DNA of 64,000 nt from Blastocladiella emersonii ATCC 22665 (Eukaryota; Fungi; Blastocladiomycota): contig JANHCV010000001.1 of NCBI GenBank assembly GCA_025594325.1, positions 5,022,001-5,086,000 on the forward strand, read 5' to 3'. The stretch's first letter is position 1. Every line of letters begins with the position of its first letter. A program made the translations under genes and the position numbers. Below are positions 3,378 to 54,642 of this stretch, piece by piece. The notes below the pieces were generated by a model, which did not search any database, was not told where the DNA came from, and worked only from the letters and a program-made list of their open reading frames with translations.

Positions 3378-5984
3378 CTACAGAACGAGGGCAAAGAGAA
3401 CCGGAACTGCCGAAAGTAATAGCGTCGTACAAACAGCAAGGAACCCGCTCGAACCGTCCACCAGCGCGCCGTGCCGCTGCGGCGGCGACGCGTTGGTCGA
3501 GTTGGTCGAGTTCCAGCCTTTGAAATCGGATGACGTTGGCAAAGTTGTTAAGTTTGCGGTCGTTGTAGTCGGCGTGGTCGAGTACGTGGTCGTGCTGGAC
3601 GACGTGGAGGAACTCGATGGCGGAGTAGACCAGCGATTGATCGGAGTCGGCGTGGGGGTCGGAGTCGGCGTGGAGGTTGGAGACAGCGTTGAAGTAGTCG
3701 TAGCCGTTGGAGTCGGAGTTGATGAGGGTGATGATGATGAGGGACTCGATGTGGAGGTCGATGTTGGGGGCGCCGCGGTGCCGCGAGTCGTGGTGCAGGA
3801 GCCGGCGAGGCAGTACCCAGTCACGCCCGACGCGTGCGGGCACGACGTGTAGTCGGGCGCGAATGCGACGAGCGACGACGTGATGCTGAGGTTGACGCAC
3901 TGTCCGCTGTCGTTCCGACAGAACAGTTTGCATGCGCTGTTTCCCACGCCCAAATCGCACGACGGCGAGTAGCCGTAACCGTAGCTCGAGCACACGCTGG
4001 CCCGCGACTGGCAGAAACCGCGGTTACACGTCCCGGTGGAAGAGTTGGTGGTCGAGTTGAGGAAGCACGACGCGCCGTTGGCGACCTTGCGAACCGTGCA
4101 CACGAACGAGTTTCCGGTACACGTATCCACCACGTCGCACTGCTGCTGTACCGCGTCCGTCGCGCGCTGGCGACAGATGGTGCCGGCGGCGGCAAACTGG
4201 CAGTTCCGGCAGCACTTGCCGTTCTTGTCGGCGCAAACGGCGCCCGTGCGAAGGCGGCAGCGCGCGGTACAGCAGGCGCTGCCGGTGAGCGGGTTGCCCG
4301 AGTCGCACTGCTCTCCGGGATCGACGATCCAGTTTCTACACAAGGGTCGTTGTTAGAGAGAGAGAGATCGGACGTGTCGATACGCAGCGTTGAGTGTACC
4401 CGCAGAGCGCCGGCACGTTGTCGAGACACCTCGTGTCCACGCTGGCGAGAAAGCTGGTGATGGCCGTGTCCGAGCAGCTCGAGAACTGGGTCGGGAGCGC
4501 ACCAGACGAAGTGCACGTCGACTCCTGCATGATAAAGCCATGCTCCGGGCAGTCGTCCTGCACCGAGTCATGTCCCGCACCAAAACTGTGGCCCATTTCG
4601 TGCGCCATCATGGTCCCCTGGTACGCGAGATCGACGACGCGCGGGGCATGGACCACGGCACACGAGTTGGCCGTGCACATGCCGCCGTAGTAGCCGTACC
4701 CCTCGAGGGTGTCCTGGCTGCCCATAACCGTGAGATTGCGGCCGCTGAGCAGGTGGCCGAGGTCGTTGGACGCGAGAAAGGAGCCGGCGTTGGCCGGATC
4801 CGAGGCCTGCGACTGCCGCCACTCGCAAAATTCGATGAGCAGCCTCCAGGCGTTGACGCCCGTTGTGCTCTCGGCAACCCACATGGGCGCGGTCGCCGTG
4901 TACTGGCCGGCGACGGTGATGATGATGCGGTACGGGTCGGCGATCAGGTTGGAGCGCAGGTACAGCGCGGCAGCGACGTAGACGATCTCGAGCGCCGAGA
5001 GTTACGTATCGTCGCCGAAGATCTGGTACCGCTGGTAGTCGTTGGCGATCATGAGCTCGACCCTCAGGTTGGCCGTAGATGCGATCTGGCGGCGGACGAG
5101 CTGCGTCATCTCGAGTGCCGACGAGTGGAAGGAGGTGCCGCCGATCAGGCTGAGCTCGGCCGGGTCGCGGTTCTGCAGCCGTTTACGACGCGGCGCCGAC
5201 GGCGGGAACCCGGGGTCCTTGTTCAGGCAGAAATGTTCCGAGTTCGAGTTGGGCGACGTTGCGGTCTCACGGAGCAGGACGTGGCGACGCGCGAGGCCAG
5301 TGGTTTTGGTCGTGTCCTGCTCGAGCGCGTGGATCGAGTAGCGGAACGTCGAGTTGATCTGGATCAGTCCGTGCTACTCGGTCGAAAGTCACTGTTAGCG
5401 TTTTTGGACTCGTGTGAGAGAAGGAACCCGCGAACGCACCAGCCCGACACACGCACTCACAGCGACGACTGAGCCCAGCTCGCCGAGAACGTGGCCATGG
5501 AAGAGGCAGTCGACACGCCCATTCGCTGCATCCTTGACTTCGCCCCCACTGTAGATGTGCTGGTATCCCGGGCTGATCAGCTCCTTGTTGCGCTACATTC
5601 CGTGCCGCGTCAGCAAGCGGCGTCGCCAGCTTCACAAGTAGGTCGAAAGTACCTTGAGCTGGATCGTCAATCCATCTGACCCGACGCCCGAGAGTTTCAC
5701 GAACGCGTGGTCGCGGTACGTGGAGGTGCCTTCGAGATCACGGCGCTGCAGCGTCGAAAGCGCGTGGCCCGTCGCTGGGTGGACCAGTGTTGCGTCCACG
5801 AGAACCTGCTCGACGGAACTCGGTAGCTCGAGTCCTACACCATTTTCCATCGGCTAGATGCTTGACGGCGGTACGGCGACGCATGACCTACCGCGCTTGG
5901 TGAGCACGGCGTGACCCTGGCCTTGCGTCGCGAGCACGACAAGCGGCAGGCCGAGACTTAACAGTCGAGTTGTATGATTTTCAT
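3378..5984 (-). pseudogene. ADAM/reprolysin metalloprotease (prodomain, M12B, disintegrin, Cys-rich, S/T stalk, hydrophobic C-terminus) with an in-frame TAA
   Basis: HEMGHSFGAGHD zinc motif (4567-4602) plus Met-turn (GFIM); CGNWIVDPGEQCD disintegrin start; prodomain CLFHGHV..SVVAVSACVGLHG; RRKR. Introns 5891-5835, 5652-5593, 5439-5374, 4399-4336. TAA at 5004-5002 is in frame. The family call is firm; pseudogene versus sequence error is unresolved. Confidence 0.6.
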
Positions 5985-6495
5985 GGCTTCTACGGTCTAT
6001 GCTTGGTGATCTCGGGGAGAGCGATCCGGGGACGGGTGTCTCCTTGACGCTTGGGGCTGGCAGCCGGTGTGGCGCGACGCGCCGAGACGCGCCGAGATGT
6101 CACGTGTGGTGTCTCCCGCAGTGTCTCGCACCGCGGCACGTGCGCGGGCACTTCCATCCCTTCCTTTCCTTGCTCAGCTCAGCCATGTGCTCGTTGAGGA
6201 GCATGGCGCGCGTCGCGCGAGCGTCGCGACCGATTGTGAAAGCAGCGACCGGGAACCCGACGGCTGTGGTGGCGCCACTCGCTGCTGAGCCACCCGTCTC
6301 CCAGGCTGACGTAAATGGCAAGCAGACGCGCGTAACGTCGTTACGTTGCAACGAGACGCTTACGGAAAACTCCTCGAACTCGACCACAAGCGGCGGCAAT
6401 TGCTACATAACCCGACCAGCGCCCGCACCATCCTCCTGCTGCAACACCAACTCCCCGAGTACCAGCACCCTTGCTACGAACCGCCTCGCACCACC

Positions 6496-44884: not shown

Positions 44885-46803
44885 ATGATCAACGCCAAGC
44901 GGCTGCAGCCGCGGTCGCCGCTGCAAAAGGCCGCCATGGCGCTGTACTGGCCCGCGCTGATCGCCGTCCTCCCGATCACGACGCTCGTGCTCACGCCGTT
45001 CCTGGTGCCCGGCGCCATCGTCGCGGGCATCCTGGCCCTCGTGATCGGCGGTAACCCGATCCCCTACACGATGCAGTTTCTCGCCGACGCCGGACCCCGC
45101 GCGCGCGCCTTCCTCGGCTCGCTCGGCCCGCGCTGGCTCGATAACTCGCCCCCGCACCCGACCTACGTCCACGATGGGGTACGCGCGTGTTTTGCGGCAT
45201 CATCCGGCGCGGGACGTGTCACTGACTCTGCCATCGCCCGAGTGTAGGAGTTCCCGACGATTGAGAACGTGCCGTCGTCGTTCCGCTGGCAGTTTGCTGT
45301 GGTCCGCGGCCCGGCGTACCTGCGCAAGATGATCACCAGCTTCTTCTACGCCACCTACCTCGCGCTCTTCCGCCACAAGATCCGGCCCATGGAGGACGAG
45401 GAGATGGGCAAGATGTACGCGTCGCTGCACCCGCTGTCCGTGTACCCGACCTCGAACTGACCCACCACCTCTCGCTCTCGCATAGCGTGCTCCGCTCGAC
45501 GTACGTCAAGTTCCTCAAGAAGATCGACAAGGTGCCCGACTGGGCGGTCGAGGCGGGCGTGACGCCGGCTGCGCCGACGGACAAGATCGCGTACTACCTC
45601 GCCGACTGCACGTACGTCGGGCAGGTCAAGCCGTACAAGGGCATGCACATTGCGCCGACCGTGACGCTGTGGCGGTCGATGGACCGCACGGACCGCCCGC
45701 TCGATTCGCCGCGCGACCTGTACACGCCGCGCCGCGAGCGCGACTTCCCCGAGCTCGTGCCCGTCGCCATCAAGGTGTTCCCCAAGAAGCGCGAGGCGTA
45801 CGTCGCGCGCCCCGGCGACGCGGCGTGGGACGGCGGCAAGACCTACGCCCTCCATGGCATGAACCACCTGGGCACGCTCCGCGACCACCCCAAGATCCAC
45901 TTCCCGTTCGACACCATCAACGTCTACACGCTCCGCCTCCCGCGCAACCATATCATCCGTCAGCTTCTCACCCCGCACCAGCAGCTCACGCTCACGCTTA
46001 ACGACATTGTGCTCAACGTACGTCGCTCGCTTGCGCCGAACCTTATTCGATCAAACTGCTGACTACCGCACCGCAACAACTCGTAGAGCTACATTGCGTC
46101 GGTCGTCGTCAACCCGTTCATGACCCAGAGCCCGTTCGACGCGTCGCCCGAGGAGCTGCGCAAGTACCTGCAGGGCACCAAGGACGAGTTCGTGTTCTCT
46201 ACGAAGCCCTTCCCCGAGGACGCCTTCACCAACTCGCCGTACGTGCTGCAGCTGCAGCGGTACTACGCGGCGACGCGCACGTTCGTCGGCCAGGTGCTCG
46301 CGACGTCGGCGGCGACGGGCAGCGCGCGCGTCGACGACAAGGCGGCGAGCGAGTGGGCCGACGCGATCGCGGCGATCCTCCCTGGGTTCCCCAACGGCGA
46401 CGCGTGGGTGGAAGGCGGTGACGCGTACCGGGCTGACGTGCTGGCGCTCATCATGTGGAACCTCTCCTTCTCTCACACGCTCGACCACTACTCGTTCTAC
46501 GCGATCCCGTGGGACGTGAACCCGTGGCGTCTCCGCGTGCCCGTCCCGCCGACGCGCGACGACGACTTTGACTACGAGCGCGCCCACGACCGCGTCGACG
46601 CGTGGAAGCTCGCGCAGTGCGAGATGACCTTCTTCTACACGGGCTCGTCCACGTCCATGGCCAAGGTCGACTACCGCTTCAACGACCCCAAGCTCAAGCA
46701 GCTCAACCGCGACTTCATCAAGTCGATGCACAAGATCGACGCGATCAAGGACTCGGCCAAGATCCTGCCGCTCGCCGACATTGGCCAGAGCATCGACTTC
46801 TAG
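44885..46803 (+). CDS. Divergent lipoxygenase-like metalloenzyme with an N-terminal membrane anchor, 578 aa
   Basis: Exons 44885-45178, 45248-45441, 45486-46017, 46087-46803. AW..GK..A......L.DHPKIHF..D.I...T.RLPRNHIIRQLLTPH..LTL.LN follows the LOX core helix; SFSHTLDH; ends GQSIDF. Confidence 0.75.
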
Positions 46804-47232
46804 ACGGGCGGCTCGGTCACGGTCGGGAGCGTGCATTCGGTGTTGTCCAGTGTGTGGAATACCCTCCTCCCTCACCCGTCGCTCTTTGCTCTCGGCTTGT
46901 TGTGCATACGATTAGATCCTCATTTTTCGCACTAAATGCCTTGGAAAGAACTACGCGAACTACGTAGCGGAGGGCCAGACTCGGCTGTTGATGCCTGAGG
47001 TGATCACGCGAGGCCGAAGCCTCCGGTGGTTGCGGCCACGCTGAGTGTATGCAGTCTGCACTCGCTCTCCGATATAGCGTATAACTCGTCAAGTGGCTCT
47101 CTCTTTCCTCATACATCATCAGGTTGACACTTCCCGCGTTTTGCTGTGCAAGGCCCTCCTCACTCACTCCTGCTCCTGCCGCACCCCCGCTGCGCCGAAA
47201 TCTCTCCAAGCAGCACACAAAGCCTCTACACA

Positions 47233-47604
47233 ATGTCGACGTGGACGAAAAAGCTCCGGTTGCTCAACCGCTGCCACACAATTCGCACCAACATCTCGCC
47301 GTTGGCGGGGTCCATGGTGCCATTCCAGGGCACCGCGTCGACGCTTGTGGACGGCACGCCGACCCCCACCCCCACCCCAACTCCCGCGCTCAAGCAGCCA
47401 GCGGAGCAAGGTTTTAGCCCGTGCCAGCTACTCAGGATCCAGCTGTCCAAGTACGAACCGCTTACCTGGCGTTGGTCTTCCGACGTGCCCAAGCCGAAGC
47501 ATGAGCTTTTCGCCCCCGCATTTGAAGGGTCAGCGGAGGTGTCCATCCTTGGTGCTGCGGGCGTCACGGTTCTGGCTGCTGCGCTCTTCTGGATGGTCAA
47601 ATAA
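47233..47604 (+). CDS. Possible orphan tail-anchored protein (123 aa)
   Basis: CT-rich leader, ACAATG start, PT repeat, C-terminal hydrophobic VSILGAAGVTVLAAALFWMVK; weaker codon bias than neighbours; no recognisable family. Confidence 0.35.
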   Translation: MSTWTKKLRLLNRCHTIRTNISPLAGSMVPFQGTASTLVDGTPTPTPTPTPALKQPAEQGFSPCQLLRIQLSKYEPLTWRWSSDVPKPKHELFAPAFEGSAEVSILGAAGVTVLAAALFWMVK

Positions 47605-48015
47605 AGATTGTAAGTGTTGGTTGGTGGTTTAACCACTACTTGATCGAGACTGTCGAGAAGGTGAGGAATGAGCGGGTAAGCGACACGGCCATTGTGACGG
47701 GATGTTTGCGTTCGTAGCCCACTTCCGCCTTTCCCTCTCGCTGAGCCGGAAGTCTGCTTTCAGCAACAACTCTTCTCTAACGATTCTTTAGTCGTACGAG
47801 CACTCGAGTCGAGCAGCAATTACTTTCGCGCTGCTTCGGTCCGCGGCCAATGGACGCGTTGCGCCACAACTGATCCACCGTCCGCCAGCGTACGAACCAT
47901 GTGATCCCGTTCCAGACGTCAATTTGTATGTAACAAAGTCGCTGATTAAGAAAAATTAACAACGATTAACAAACCCGACCCACACACACATTCGTACTCG
48001 CGAGCTTGCGCGACT

Positions 48016-48068
48016 GCAGCACCCGCACGGCAGGCGCGACCTTTCCACGACGGCCGCGCGGACGCTGC
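48016..48068. repeat. 53-bp hairpin repeat, copy 1
   Basis: GCAGCACCCGCACGGCAG-17 nt-CGGCCGCGCGGACGCTGC; 14/18 Watson-Crick pairs. Confidence 0.85.
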
Positions 48069-48697
48069 ATTGCAGGAACCACGCTCGAATGAGGGTGTGA
48101 TTTGAAGAGCTGGATTGATGGTATGAATGCTGAGAGTGAAGGGAATGGCGTGACAACAACCTCGCTCTGTCCGCGCTAGCTTAGTAGCCACAAGCTTCCT
48201 TGAGAAATGTGGGAGGTAGCGAGAGGTGCCCAGCCGCGTTATCGCGGGATTCCTTGATCAAGCAAGCACACCGCCAAAATGGACATCGAGAGACTACCGC
48301 ATGTCCATCATATCGGAAACCGGGCCAAGAAGCCCCAGAACAATATGAAAATGCGCACTAGACCGCCAGTCAGGCTGGCAAGCGCGGGAATCAGGATTGC
48401 CAACGGAACACGAGAAGAAGTTGCGCGAATAATGACAATCGAGCATGGTCGCGAAAGACTTGCAGCACTTCGACCGTGAAAATCAACACACGAAGGCGCG
48501 GATGGCTGAGGGAGCCCGACGCGCGTGACGCGCCAAGTGATCGGTACGCGTTGCGCCACTCGCGCCACAGCTGAGCCACTTACGTCATCGGGCGGAGGGC
48601 GTGCGAACCCGCTGCAAGCTCCGGTACGGGAGATTGGAAGCATATTATCGCGGTAGTCACGAACAAGAAATCTCACGCAGCACGATTATAAACGTCC

Positions 48698-48750
48698 GCA
48701 GCGCCCGCGCGGCCGGCGCGGCTTTTTCACGGCGGCCGCGCGGATGCCGC
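48698..48750. repeat. 53-bp hairpin repeat, copy 2
   Basis: GCAGCGCCCGCGCGGCCG-GCGCGGCTTTTTCACGG-CGGCCGCGCGGATGCCGC; 15/18 Watson-Crick pairs. Confidence 0.9.
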
Positions 48751-48914
48751 GAGCCAAAGCCAAGGCTTGCGTGAGATGATGGTCAAATCTGGCCCGAGTG
48801 AGCGAAGCAGGCTTCTGATTGCACAAATTCGCTGAGATTCGTGAGAGTAGGGGCCGATCAAGCGCGCGAACGGTCGTAGAGGAAGGACACGGTTGTGAAA
48901 TTAGAAAGCAAATG

Positions 48915-48938
48915 TCAGCGTCAGCGTCAGCGTCAGCG
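48915..48938. repeat. (TCAGCG)4 microsatellite
   Basis: Four perfect hexamer units. Confidence 0.9.
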
Positions 48939-49266
48939 AGTAGCTTCGCACTCGTCGCAACCATTCTCAGTCCTTTGAACACCGGTAATAGTGCGCCAGA
49001 CCGCACCGGCTGCAGCGTCGTGGACACCGGCCTCCGATCACATCCATGACATAGCGCACAAACCGCTCAACGCGCGGATCAACTCGGAAGTCGACGCGTG
49101 CAAGATCAAGTTGTGTGGTTATCGGCCAATGAGACTACCTCGCTCCACTAAAGCTCAAGATTGGTATCAGGTACGTGTAGATTTGCCCGAAAACTTCGAA
49201 TCGCTTGAAGCAACACCCGCAGACCGATGAGAGCCGCGACCCAACACTCGCGCGACATTCGCGTGG

Positions 49267-49319
49267 GCAGCGGCCGCGCGACCGGCGCGGTCTTTTCACG
49301 GCGGCCGCGCGGGCGCTGC
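49267..49319. repeat. 53-bp hairpin repeat, copy 3
   Basis: GCAGCGGCCGCGCGACCG-GCGCGGTCTTTTCACGG-CGGCCGCGCGGGCGCTGC; 16/18 Watson-Crick pairs. Confidence 0.9.
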
Positions 49320-50211
49320 GTCGAGCAGTACCGCGTGAGGGCGAGGTCCGGGTCCAAGCGATCCAGGAGTGAGACAGAGATGATGCGAGCGGAATGTGTG
49401 AAGCTGACGAAGTGTCCAAGCGATATGTGGCTCTCGTTCAGGAAGTGACGAATGACCAGTGAGCTGTGAAGCGGACGTAATCTGGCCAGCGAGGGCGTTG
49501 TTCGACCTCGGCGTGCTGAGAGCATCGACAGTTGAACAGCGCAGACCAAGCCGATTAAAGGATGGCGATGCCGAGAATGTTGTTTTGCGACTCGGCATGC
49601 AGCACTGCAACTCAGACGCTATGCCTTGCCGCTGATCCACATGAGGGAACGCGAGTCGACCTGGAACGTCAGCGCGGCCAAGCCAAACGACACAACGGTG
49701 CTGGGATTGGCAGTCACTTCCAATTGCGAAAAAAAAAGTGCCCCGGATGTTGCCCAAACAACGGGCAAGCTGCTCGTCACGACCCAACAAACACTTGACA
49801 GCTCATCTTTACTGCAGTCGATGCGCGCGCGAAGCTGGCAAGTGCCATTGAGCGATGTCCCACGATTAGTGCTGTCCTGGACCTCGAGTACCAAGTGGAT
49901 CGACTGATTGCTGCAAGGCGAAACCGGCGAGGACCGAGCGAAGCCAGGACGCGTGCGTGAACCAGAGAACGCGCGCCCGCCATGATAGCAAGAGGCACGG
50001 CGGTGCTTGTTATACATGTTGCTGCAAGTGATACATGGTCTACGGTTGAGGGTGCGATGATACGCGCGGCGAGCGGAAGAGCGAGTGCGGTGGCCGGGGC
50101 TGGGCCGCGCACGGCACCGACCGCGGCGCGTCGCGTTTCAGGCTTGCCACCTCCACCTCGCTCAGAAACCATCGACAAAAATCGATATCTTACACGCTCA
50201 ACACACTCGCT

Positions 50212-53200
50212 TTACAAAACCTCGAGCCGGCGGAGCGTGCCCTCGAGGACCTGGCGGGGCACGATCTTGGAGTTACCGATGGTGGCGCTGACCGAGAGCC
50301 GCGGGAGGTACTCGTGGAGCAGCTGGCCGAGGAGCTCGCGCTGCTCCTCGGGGTCGAACACCCTGGGCGACGAGTCGAACGCGAACCCGCCCGCGGTCCC
50401 GTCGGCGGGCACGAACACGGACGGCAGCTCGGCGAACATGCTGGACAGCAGGACTGCGTAGTCGGCAAAGTGCGGCATGGCGAGCAGCTTGCGGTACAGC
50501 TCGCCGAGCCGCTTGCCGTGGAACAGCGCCGACGGGTCCGACTTGCGGTGCTGGACGAACAGGCGCACGTAAAACCGCAGGATGTTCGAGTACACGGGCA
50601 GCTTGTTGACGTCGGGCGGCGTGGCGGGCGTGAAGTTGGCCGCGTCGACGAGCGGGCACGCACGCTCGAGCGCCGACCACATGGCGACCACGAACATCGG
50701 GTTCTGCAGCGCGACGCCCTGCGTGAAGATGGCCAGGATCCGGCGGTTGCCCTCGCTGCCGAGGTTGTCGAGGAGCAGCTTGATCACCGTCTGCCGCAGC
50801 GCGTCGCCGTGGCCCTGCTGCTCGGCGCGCGACAGGCACGCGCGCACGACGCCCGTCGCCTGCGAGAGCGGCTTGCCCGACGGATCGGGGGCCTCGAGCA
50901 GCGCGCGGACGTGCCGCTCGACCTCGGCCTTGAGGTCCGCGAGCGAGCGCGCGGGCTCGTGCGACGACGCAGCCGCCGCCATGCTCGCGGCGCCCGAGTA
51001 CGACATGGAGCTTATGGGCCGGGAGGTCGGAGCGGGAGCGGGCGCGGGCGACGGCGGCGCAAAGATGTTGGCGGCGGTGGTCCCGTTGGGCGGGAAGCTG
51101 GTGCGGCTGCCGGCGCCACCGACGCGGCTGGCCATGTCGTTGGCGAGCGACGCGAACACGGCCGACGGGTAGATGGGCTCCGAGTCGACCGAGTCGGCGA
51201 CCGAGGCCGGGGCCGGCGCGGGCTGCTGCTGCTGCGAGTGCTGCTGCTGCTGCATGCGCGCGGGCGTCGACGCCGTAGTGCCCGAGTACCCGCCCGAGTA
51301 CGCGTTTGTGAACGCGTCCATGTCAAAGAGGTCGGCCGTTGAGGTACCCGACGCGGTCGGCGGAATCGAGGCGGGCGCCGAGGCGGTGCGGGCCGAGTCG
51401 TACGAGCCGAACAGCGAGTGCTCGGCCTGGACCTGCGCGATCGGCGTGGACGGCGCATCGAACGCGCCGATGAGCGGGTCCGCCGCTGACGACGAGTACG
51501 AGGGCGCGGGCTGCTCCATCTTGGGCAGCGCGGGCGCGGGCGTCGGTGCAGCGGCGGCCGCCCCGCCGAGCATCTGGACCTCGGCCGCGTGCGCGTCGGT
51601 GGCGCGCTGGACGGCGGCCACGAGCTCGTCGCCGGCGGGGTGGACGCTGACGGTCGAGATGAGGTTGTCGAGGCGGTCGCCCTCGAACTTGGCGATCGCC
51701 GTCGTCGCGCGCTCGGACCCGAGCACCGCGGCGGCGAGGGTGACGGGCGGCTCGGACTCGGCGTGCGACGAGTGCTTGAGGGCCTCCTCGACGGCGACGA
51801 GCAGCGGCATGGCAAAGTAGTTGTGGGTCTCGCCCGACCACGGGATCGTCGCGCAGATCTCGACCCACAGGCGCAAAAAGTTGACGTCGTCGGCGCCCGT
51901 GGCCGTCGACGTGGTAAAGGCGCGGGTCACGGACGGGCACCGCGTCAGCACCTCGACGAGGAACGCCAGCTTGGCCTCGCGCAGCGTCATGACACCGACC
52001 ACGGCCTGGCACAGGTACTCGAGCTTGGCCGACGCGAGGAACGAGGGCGACAGGAGGTGCTTCTACAGGGGCAGATGCAAGCGAGAGTCAGTTGATGATT
52101 TCGCTCCACTGGGCCAACCCAGCAAAAAAGCGTACCGCGATGGCGCAGTAAATGAGGCGACACGCGGCGAGCGTCCACGGCAACTGCCCCGCGGGCTCGA
52201 GGCTGCCGCTGAGCGTGCGCGCGCGCTGGTAGATGCCGCGGACGTGGCGCGTGAACCGGCGGATCCAGACCGTGGACGGCCACATGGGCTTGATGACCTC
52301 GTCGACGAACCCCTTGTAGTCGATGCCGGCCATGAGGGCGCCAATGTCGACGCGGTCGAACAGCGGGAGCACCTCGAGCGCGTCGAGGTGGATCTTGAAC
52401 ACGGTGTTGCCGGCGATGCACTGGACAGCGGTACCCTGGAGCTCGGTCGCGGGCCACTCGGCGCGGTCCATGACGAACAGGGGCCACTCGGGGCGCACCG
52501 CGTTGGCGCGGTTGTGCGCGACCGTCGCCCAGTGCGGCTCGTGCGGCGGCACAAAATCGGACTGCTGCAGGGCGCCGTCAAGGAGGCCGCGGTTCTGGAA
52601 CGACTCGAGGAGGTCCTGGGTCGCGGCACGGTCCTCGGCGAACATGGCGTAGCCGGCGAGGTTGAAGACGATCGGGACGAGCAGCTCGAGGATGTGGCGC
52701 GGCGGCAGCCGCGGGTCGTCGTCGAGCACGGCGCGCAGCCACACGACGACGGGCGCGACGTACAGCTCGGGGCACGTCTCCTTGACGGCGTCGTGCACAG
52801 CGATACACGTCCACAGGGCGACGGCGTTGGCCTGGCACGCGTGCCACGCGGGCTCGTTGGTCGGGGCGGGCCGCTCCATGATGGGCCCCCACAGGGCGGG
52901 CACGAGGCGGAGGCAGCCCGAGAAGGCGGCGAGGATGAAGGGGCGGCCGGTGCTGCGCGAGAAGTGGCCCGAGTGGCGGACAACGTGCTTCTCGGGCCCG
53001 CGCGACCGCATCGTGATCTGCTCGACGGCGTGCGCCATGGACCGGATGATGGCAACGGCGGCGGCCGCGCGGCCGTACTTTTCGCGCAGCGTCTGCGAGT
53101 GGGCGAGCAGCTCGCGCATGACGCCGGCGTCGGGCCGGCGCGAGTTGAATGAGTTGGCGAAATGGTCGACGACAAAGTCGAGCAGCTTGTGGGCCTCGCC

Positions 53201-54642
53201 GTGCGCCGACGCCATCTCGGCCTCGCACCGCTGCGCCCACTCGAGGTGCTCGGTCGTGCACTTTTGGATGGCGGTGCGCGCGCGGACCGTGTCGGAGATG
53301 GAGACCGGGAACGACGACAGCGCCATGGACCAGTCCTCGTCGTGGTCGGCCGAGGTGGCGGCAGCAGCGGCCGGCGCGCGCGACTTGGGCTCGGAGGCGC
53401 GGCGGCCCGGACCCGAGCCGCGCAGGCTGGGCGAGACGAGGGCAGCGAGGCGCGCGGCGTTGGCAGCCGACTTTTCGGGATCGGGCAGCGGGGTGGGGAT
53501 GCGGCCCTGGGCGGGCGCCGCGGGAGCAGTGGAGCGAGGTGCGGGCGCGGGAGTCGGGGTGCGCGCAGTGGTGGCGTCGGCGAGCATGTTCTCCCACGAC
53601 TGGTCCTGCTGCTGCTGCTGCTGCTGCTGCGGGGCGGCGGGCTCGGGCGCATGGTGGTGCTGATGGGGCTCGTAGGCGGGCGCAGCGGTCTCGAGCTTGC
53701 GGAACTCGACCTCGGGCGCGGGCGCGGGCTTGGTGTAGGCGGTGGTGCCGTTCGCGGTGGTAGCGGTGCCGTTGGTAGCGGGGGCGGGCCAGTCGAACAG
53801 GCTGTTGACGAGGTCGGTGGCGGCACCGTTCCCGGCGGTCGACGGGCGCGTCGCGGCGGGCGTGTGCTGCGCCTGCTGCTGCTGCGACGGCGGGTGGAAC
53901 GCGTCGGCAAGCTGCTCGCGGACAGGAGCAGCGATCGGCGCGTCGCCCTCGATGAGCGCGAGCGCGGCGCGTAGGTGCGCGGCGAGGTCGCCCGAGAGCG
54001 CCGTGGCGTCGATCTCGGTCTCCTTGTCGGTCGCGCGCGCAAAGTCGGCATGGGCGTCAGCGACCTGGCGGTGCAGCGCGGTCTCGGCGTCGCGGAGCTG
54101 GTGCTTAAGCTGCTCGGTGCTGGCGCGGGTGGCGCTCTGGAAGAAGGCGGCCTTGATCTCGGCGGCGCGCTGCGCGTCAAGCAGGACCAGCATGGTGCGG
54201 TACAGGGCGTGGCGGTACGCGTGCAGGTCGGCCGGGCGGGCGTCGGCGAGCGCGCCCGCGGCGTACCGCGCGGCGAGCAGGCGGAACAGGTCGAGCTGCA
54301 CGGTGGGAGCCATGGCGGCCCACGGCGCCGAGTTGGTGGTGGGGGCGAGAGGCTCCGAGACAGCGGCAGGCGCGGGCGGCGGTGCCGGAGCGGGCGGCGG
54401 CGGCTGCGCGTAGCCCCCGAACATGTCGAGGTCGGCCTGCGAGAGGATCGGCGGCGCCGGGTCGTCCACTACTCGCCGGCGGCGGTGGCGAGGGTGTCAG
54501 CGCAATGCCATCGGTGGATGCGCGAGAGCCGAGCGAGACAGTGCATACACAGAGACGGGTGGTTCGGCGTGCTGAGCTCGCTACGCGGGGTCGGCGTCCA
54601 GTCGTCAGAGAGAAGCGAGGGCGAGAGGAGGTCGGCGGTCAT
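50212..54642 (-). CDS. Large hypothetical alpha-helical protein (about 1425 aa)
   Basis: Introns 54548-54469 and 52135-52063 join the ORFs in frame; strong GC3 bias; no motif recognised. Confidence 0.7.

Follow-up and report, generated by a model that had tools for sequence, protein, structure and literature searches.

The window, by which we mean the whole 64-kb stretch of Blastocladiella emersonii DNA analysed here, contains a 3.3-kb island (46800-50150) bounded by two convergent genes, one on the plus strand that ends near 46800 and one on the minus strand with its stop at 50212. Because codon periodicity is absent from 46800-50150, we regard this interval as non-coding. The neighbouring minus-strand gene (50212-54642, 1425 aa, with open reading frames of 596 and 793 aa) has no Pfam match, and its stop abuts the stretch that we call block B. 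The island carries three short hairpins in tandem, and the features used in the analysis are as follows:

46800..50150, no strand: gene-free, lower-GC island with the array; GC 54-64% against about 70%, no GC3 periodicity

47854..47867, plus strand: 14-mer ACGCGTTGCGCCAC, with a second copy at 48546-48559

47930..47990, minus strand: GU/U-rich tract, downstream of hairpin 1 on that strand; seen in the sequence and matching a G+U-rich zone found family-wide

48011..48069, minus strand: hairpin copy 1 (core 48016-48068; covariance-model match with flanks 47995-48117, 72.1 bits)

48693..48751, minus strand: hairpin copy 2 (core 48698-48750; covariance-model match 48672-48798, 81.9 bits)

49262..49320, minus strand: hairpin copy 3 (core 49267-49319; covariance-model match 49243-49369, 73.9 bits)

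49912..50217, minus strand: block B of unit 3 (nhmmer E=2e-13 to 3e-15, and motif alignment)

The array and its spacers

The hairpins are imperfect palindromes of 53-59 nt whose starts lie 682 and 569 nt apart. Their coordinates bear out the first-pass annotation, which had described three copies in one orientation with no indels relative to each other, and a recount returns exactly the anatomy it gave (18-nt arm, 17-nt centre, 18-nt arm), as well as its tally of nine non-Watson-Crick arm positions, made up of six A.C, one G.T and two other. Pair 7 is indeed non-canonical in 3/3 window copies (C.A, C.A and G.G), and the CGUG/CGCG pairing that the centre was said to add on the minus strand, enclosing a purine-rich loop of 7 nt, is seen in folding. 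Copy 1 carries the loop variant TTTCCAC (plus strand). A 29-nt degenerate core pattern finds three matches in the 64-kb window, precisely the three hairpins, and none in 100 shuffles. The claim that a minus-strand stem is favoured stands in part when both strands of each window copy are folded: it holds for copy 1 (-41.0 kcal/mol on the minus strand vs -34.6 on the plus strand) and copy 2 (-48.0 vs -42.1 kcal/mol) and fails for copy 3, where the plus strand is slightly better (-43.5 on the minus strand vs -46.4 kcal/mol).

The GU/U-rich tract reported at 47930-47990 on the minus strand is present, and BLAST between the window spacers agrees with the earlier statement that they share no clear homology. 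The sole homology left outside the hairpin between the window's short units is the 14-mer ACGCGTTGCGCCAC, found at nearly equal offsets, 162 nt ahead of hairpin 1 and 152 nt ahead of hairpin 2. Block B occurs once in the window and belongs to hairpin 3; read on the minus strand, it comprises a promoter-like part, a CT-rich leader, an ATG and the word ACTTnnTGCAA, 620-925 nt before that hairpin. None was detected for hairpins 1 and 2, a profile search of the two short spacers giving no significant match (E about 0.6), and resemblances to block B seen there by eye were dropped as not significant and inconsistent in order. Of the three units in the window array, the one with hairpin 3 and block B is canonical; the other two are shortened and retain no recognisable part but the hairpin. 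Its spacing is the shortest among the arrays of the family, and a local arm variant is present. A side observation concerns the word TGGTATCAG at 49161-49169, a 9-nt match to the classical initiator-tRNA primer-binding site of LTR elements, which occurs a single time and without LTR-like ends around it.

A hairpin family with co-varying arms

The window hairpins are members of a conserved, co-varying family of about 110 copies in the B. emersonii genome. The genome searched spans 32.6 Mb in 21 contigs at about 70% GC; this assembly has been published, in a genome paper that includes no repeat or small-RNA analysis (PMC9730499). Our literature search found no paper linking Blastocladiella to such a hairpin and none describing the family. 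A genome-wide search for the hairpin, proposed in the first-pass annotation, gave 30 matches to the core pattern vs 0 for the reversed control. Covariance model R1, built from alignment A1 of 28 copies, finds at least 125 matches, which after removal of opposite-strand echoes represent at least about 110 distinct places, a lower bound because 150 candidates were scored; the three window copies all match it, at 72-82 bits. Most copies fall into about 27 clusters of two to four, with the same orientation in all but one cluster and a spacing mostly of 0.6-1.6 kb, and the arrays examined sit in non-coding, gene-free islands, several of them between convergent genes. Outside this genome, an exact-core scan of metagenome contigs gave 84 matches, the best with 11/20 stem pairs, and the same scan of viral contigs gave three, 0 of them with a hairpin; diverged relatives would escape such scans.

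Some local observations accompany the search. Among the matches listed, copies are unevenly spread over contigs C5, C18, C11 and C3 vs C1: C5 (1.4 Mb) has about 20, and C1 (5.1 Mb) has five, namely the three of the window and two singletons. At locus L034, an apparently intact gamma-glutamyltranspeptidase gene (4913-6473, plus strand) lies between the hairpin units of one array; it is an ordinary gene in two frames, probably with one intron, and its direction is that of the inferred hairpin RNA. No protein is shared near the copies, the open reading frames that cluster between loci being translations of the repeat itself. On contig 18, a segmental duplication (loci L008 and L009, at about 484 kb and 788 kb) contains a two-hairpin array, and its two copies are identical for 2.4 kb or more. 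Its edge, which is 5-12% diverged, crosses one hairpin, in which 4/57 positions differ, including a loop change to TTTCCAC; because this hairpin sits at the edge of the identical tract, the duplicate is uninformative on constraint.

Across the family, the centre GCGCGGnCTTTTCACGGCG (plus strand) hardly varies, if at all, the upper stem is strongly conserved, and the lower stem shows compensatory pair changes; the window copies have the same make-up, a 57-nt hairpin with the invariant centre and co-varying arms. The covariation sought in a larger alignment is significant in A1. Paired cells make up 85.6% vs 28-53% when the partners are slid, and both sides have changed in 40 cells vs 13.6 in shuffles. 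The observed value is reached by 0 of 500 shuffles on four of five measures and by 28/500 on the remaining one, pairs changed on both sides.

Homology between places ends within about 60-90 nt of the centre, and between arrays only the hairpin aligns. In the arrays examined, neighbouring units are 85% identical over the 57-nt core and 53-55% identical over the adjacent 200 nt, with a background of 48%. With the core kept and the flanks decayed, the hairpin is either constrained in place or homogenised on its own, and GC-biased gene conversion among copies could imitate constraint. Two extensions of the structure were rejected. RNAfold pairs up to 80-90 bp in a long foldback; however, palindromy at the DNA level ends about 25 nt from the centre and the outer pairing equals that of shuffled arms, an effect of composition, since pairing between a C-rich and a G-rich arm is trivial. 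A second helix, CCGCGCUG/CAGCGCGG, is 69% paired and its covariation is not significant.

The shape and conservation of the core bear on a reading that we consider very unlikely, in which the palindrome acts as DNA, either as a cruciform or single-strand hairpin for recombination, replication or protein binding, or as a foldback/MITE insertion, and is kept by gene conversion. In its favour, the palindrome is GC-rich and nearly perfect, repeats of such composition are readily subject to biased gene conversion, and single-stranded DNA, too, tolerates G.T better than any other mismatch. The core is far better kept than its flanks, as it would be in a short module that spreads or converts alone. 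Yet the limit of DNA-level palindromy noted above argues against this reading, and the compensatory changes lead to different base pairs, which points to pairing and not to a protein half-site. It is the centre that is conserved and not the ends, the opposite of a terminal-inverted-repeat element: terminal inverted repeats are absent, and conservation is highest at the centre and falls off over about 60-90 nt. The first-pass annotation had set hundreds of dispersed copies with target-site duplications (a MITE) against its own reading; of this pattern, about 110 dispersed copies are found, and their ends are not conserved. Also against a DNA-level element, a promoter/start-like block lies 0.4-0.85 kb from the hairpin and the two are linked in position and orientation, as would not be expected of a free short insertion.

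The suggestion that the hairpins are recombination sites delimiting cassettes finds no backing either, for the spacers elsewhere in the genome are decayed copies of one unit of about 1 kb, and GTTRRRY-type and CTRR ends are lacking. Integrase-type end motifs are absent. No integron attC cores (RYYYAAC / GTTRRRY) flank the hairpins, and the spacers lack codon periodicity. The family alignment has no Helitron-type CTRR at a fixed distance on either strand, in agreement with the earlier statement that a CTRR end is missing.

Unit architecture and the strand of the structure

A second, weakly conserved stretch recurs within the arrays. It was recognised by the word TTGCAnnAAGT, which on the plus strand lies 534-931 nt after the hairpin in most units with enough flank and is rare on the other strand. 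In most of about 30 units with enough flank, arrayed units and singletons alike, the profile of this stretch, block B (~300 bp), has its match past the hairpin at +420 to +850, on the hairpin's own strand; one match has the opposite orientation. No block B precedes the first hairpins (plus strand) wherever 1.5 kb of upstream flank was examined. Read on the minus strand, the block begins with a two-part element, CGCG-NN-G-NN-CA-N3-4-CACGTG, followed about 50-80 nt on (about 100 nt in the canonical unit) by a CT-rich stretch, then by CCATGAA and ACTTnnTGCAA. In the loci examined, all nine strict two-part sites with a downstream hairpin have ACTTnnTGCAA at +87 to +110 and the hairpin at +700 to +1003, with 0 coding windows between the block B motifs and the hairpin. 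Open reading frames that begin at the block B ATG stop after a few codons.

Genome-wide, the two-part element has 297 sites vs 25 in a reversed control (for example L034:6568-6588 and, on the minus strand, L025 near 527-547), and, by reading of coordinates, three of the 100 first-listed sites fall in hairpin units. Because it is common and mostly outside the units, it looks like a general promoter element that they share. Downstream of the hairpin on the minus strand, G+U content is about 60% over +40 to +140 throughout the family, and in arrays the promoter element of the next unit follows some 190-210 nt later. Intact coding members of the family that would have lent the promoter and start were not found in the locus DNA examined. 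Judged by its sequence, the hairpin-ended unit is a directional, gene-like, non-coding element of roughly 1 kb with a promoter/start-like block at its beginning.

The direction of block B agrees with the asymmetry of G.U pairs in the stem and is independent evidence for the minus strand. Over 20 main stem positions, 72 distinct copies have 1199 Watson-Crick pairs, 112 A.C, 48 G.T and 81 other; with A.C at 112 vs G.T at 48, the share of standard RNA pairs is thus 91% for the minus strand and 87% for the plus strand, counts that come from related copies and for which a hand-computed sign test over stem positions gives about p=0.05. Part of the A.C excess could be compositional because the spacers are purine-rich on the plus strand, where their A/T ratio is about 1.2 vs a stem A.C/G.T ratio of 2.3. 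The folding energy is lower on the minus strand in 54/72 copies, and the alignment fold gives -36.6 on the minus strand vs -17.3 on the plus strand. The earlier claim that a structured element pairs better on the minus strand is upheld by the stem mismatches, the alignment fold, covariation and the orientation of block B.

Units of this form could also be mobile. On that account, the unit of about 1 kb would be a non-autonomous transposable element with a captured host promoter and start, its hairpin would be needed by the mobilising enzyme, in the way a reverse transcriptase reads a 3' stem-loop, and the covariation would stem from active masters whose copies decay. For it speak the direction of the units and the conserved structure at their 3' end, the tandem arrays and one segmental duplication. 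The roughly 110 copies are also scattered over gene-free islands that tolerate insertions, several of these islands separating convergent genes. Nevertheless, we judge this account unlikely. Of 72 RVT_1 matches, 0 lie within about 10 kb of a listed hairpin copy, the coordinates being compared by eye; young, near-identical full-length copies were not found; and the family alignment has neither sharp ends nor a poly(A), A-rich or simple-repeat tail. Moreover, the excess of hairpin identity over the rest of the unit between neighbours points to constraint in place and not to neutral decay.

Candidate functions and related systems

The first-pass annotation favoured a polycistronic locus of microRNA-like or structured non-coding RNA. 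The polycistronic part does not fit the presence of a separate promoter-like block in each canonical unit. On the microRNA-like part, a Dicer-type enzyme would turn the hairpins into RNAs of 20-24 nt, members of a microRNA-like or hairpin-siRNA family that are loaded onto Argonaute. At about 24+4 bp, the stem has the size expected of a precursor, the canonical units resemble independent non-coding transcription units like MIR genes, and four Piwi-domain matches in the genome (C17:1404132, C17:1586553, C11:2504843 and C20:476549) speak for an Argonaute. (Two of the four have identical scores and are possibly a recent duplicate.) We nonetheless find such precursors quite unlikely. A miRNA family would be expected to conserve the mature arm best and to let the loop vary. 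Here the opposite holds: the loop and apical stem stay invariant and the arms drift and co-vary, which makes the microRNA reading weak. An RNase III domain appears as a single weak match (C1:2959876, 31 bits), and an Rfam scan of eight loci at E up to 1 returned mir-7950 alone, at chance level (27.1 bits vs a cut-off of 82, E=0.11).

Quite possibly, and this is the reading that we tentatively favour, the hairpin would instead be a 3'-proximal RNA stem-loop with a protein-read apex and a possible role in marking, processing or stabilising the 3' ends of a family of non-coding Pol II transcripts. The proposed mechanism can be laid out in three steps:

(i) A transcript of the minus strand would start at the promoter-like block, pass through the leader, the ATG and ACTTnnTGCAA, continue over 0.4-0.85 kb of non-coding sequence and reach the hairpin and then the G+U-rich zone.

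(ii) The hairpin would fold into a stem of about 24 bp; above it come the apical helix CGUG/CGCG, of 4 bp, and the loop AAAAGNC, of 7 nt. A protein would probably read the sequence of the invariant loop and of the upper stem, and in the lower stem pairing alone would be required.

(iii) So recognised, the hairpin may mark the 3' end of the transcript, direct its processing or stabilise it; the concrete options are an RNase-III-type cut or a dedicated RNA-binding protein.

The function of the hairpin units can be addressed by direct experiment because their gene-like architecture (promoter, leader, hairpin, GU-rich zone) is clear. A broader version of this 3'-end reading, which we regard as doubtful though conceivable, is that about a hundred lineage-specific Pol II non-coding genes have their origin in the promoter and start region of one host gene family, and that the 3' hairpin is the sole part of their RNA under selection. 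It could then serve as the recognition module of an RNA-binding or RNase-III/Argonaute-linked pathway, for example in RNA storage or silencing in the course of the zoospore cycle, with no counterpart among described RNA families. If the 3'-end reading is right, selection in an early-diverging fungus maintains roughly a hundred copies of a single structured RNA module while their surroundings decay. The hairpin would then define a new RNA family and probably also a new pairing of an RNA with the protein that recognises it, in a lineage whose non-coding RNA is almost unexplored. Should it prove to be a transposon relic or an artefact of gene conversion, the hairpin would still mark gene-free islands in a wall-to-wall coding genome.

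Each of the readings has its model among known systems. Integron attC arrays likewise consist of imperfect palindromes in one orientation, with unlike spacers of 0.5-0.7 kb and strand-specific folding; unlike them, the present array lies in a eukaryotic genome, has no R''/R' core sites, integrase or spacer ORFs, and has homologous decayed units elsewhere. The 3' stem-loops shared by stringent LINE/SINE pairs and the foldback/MITE repeats share with it the dispersed, multi-copy occurrence in gene-poor DNA and a structure at one end of a directional unit, whereas here there is no nearby reverse transcriptase, tail, young copy or conserved end, and conservation in place exceeds that of the flanks. 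Plant and fungal microRNA-like gene families resemble it in their intergenic, non-coding, promoter-bearing units of about 1 kb, in that a precursor-size hairpin alone is conserved between paralogues, and in their frequent tandem duplicates. The B. emersonii family differs from these in its invariant loop and apex, its co-varying arms and the place of the hairpin near the 3' end of the unit, before a GU-rich zone.

The remaining comparison is with protein-recognised 3'-end stem-loops, namely that of histone mRNA and the RNase III/Rnt1 hairpins of yeast snoRNA and snRNA precursors. The host units in B. emersonii are neither histone nor snoRNA genes. Set against the histone mRNA stem-loop, with its 6-bp stem and 4-nt loop, the B. 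emersonii hairpin has a stem of 24+4 bp, a loop of 7 nt and flanking units that are non-coding, and the resemblance is limited to the word UCUUUUCA (plus strand); set against Rnt1 sites, its 7-nt loop AAAAGNC is no AGNN tetraloop. What the hairpin has in common with both is a conserved apex, a stem kept by pairing and a predicted position near the 3' end of a transcript. An apex that is read by its sequence, above a lower stem for which pairing suffices, is the logic of protein-recognised 3'-end stem-loops.
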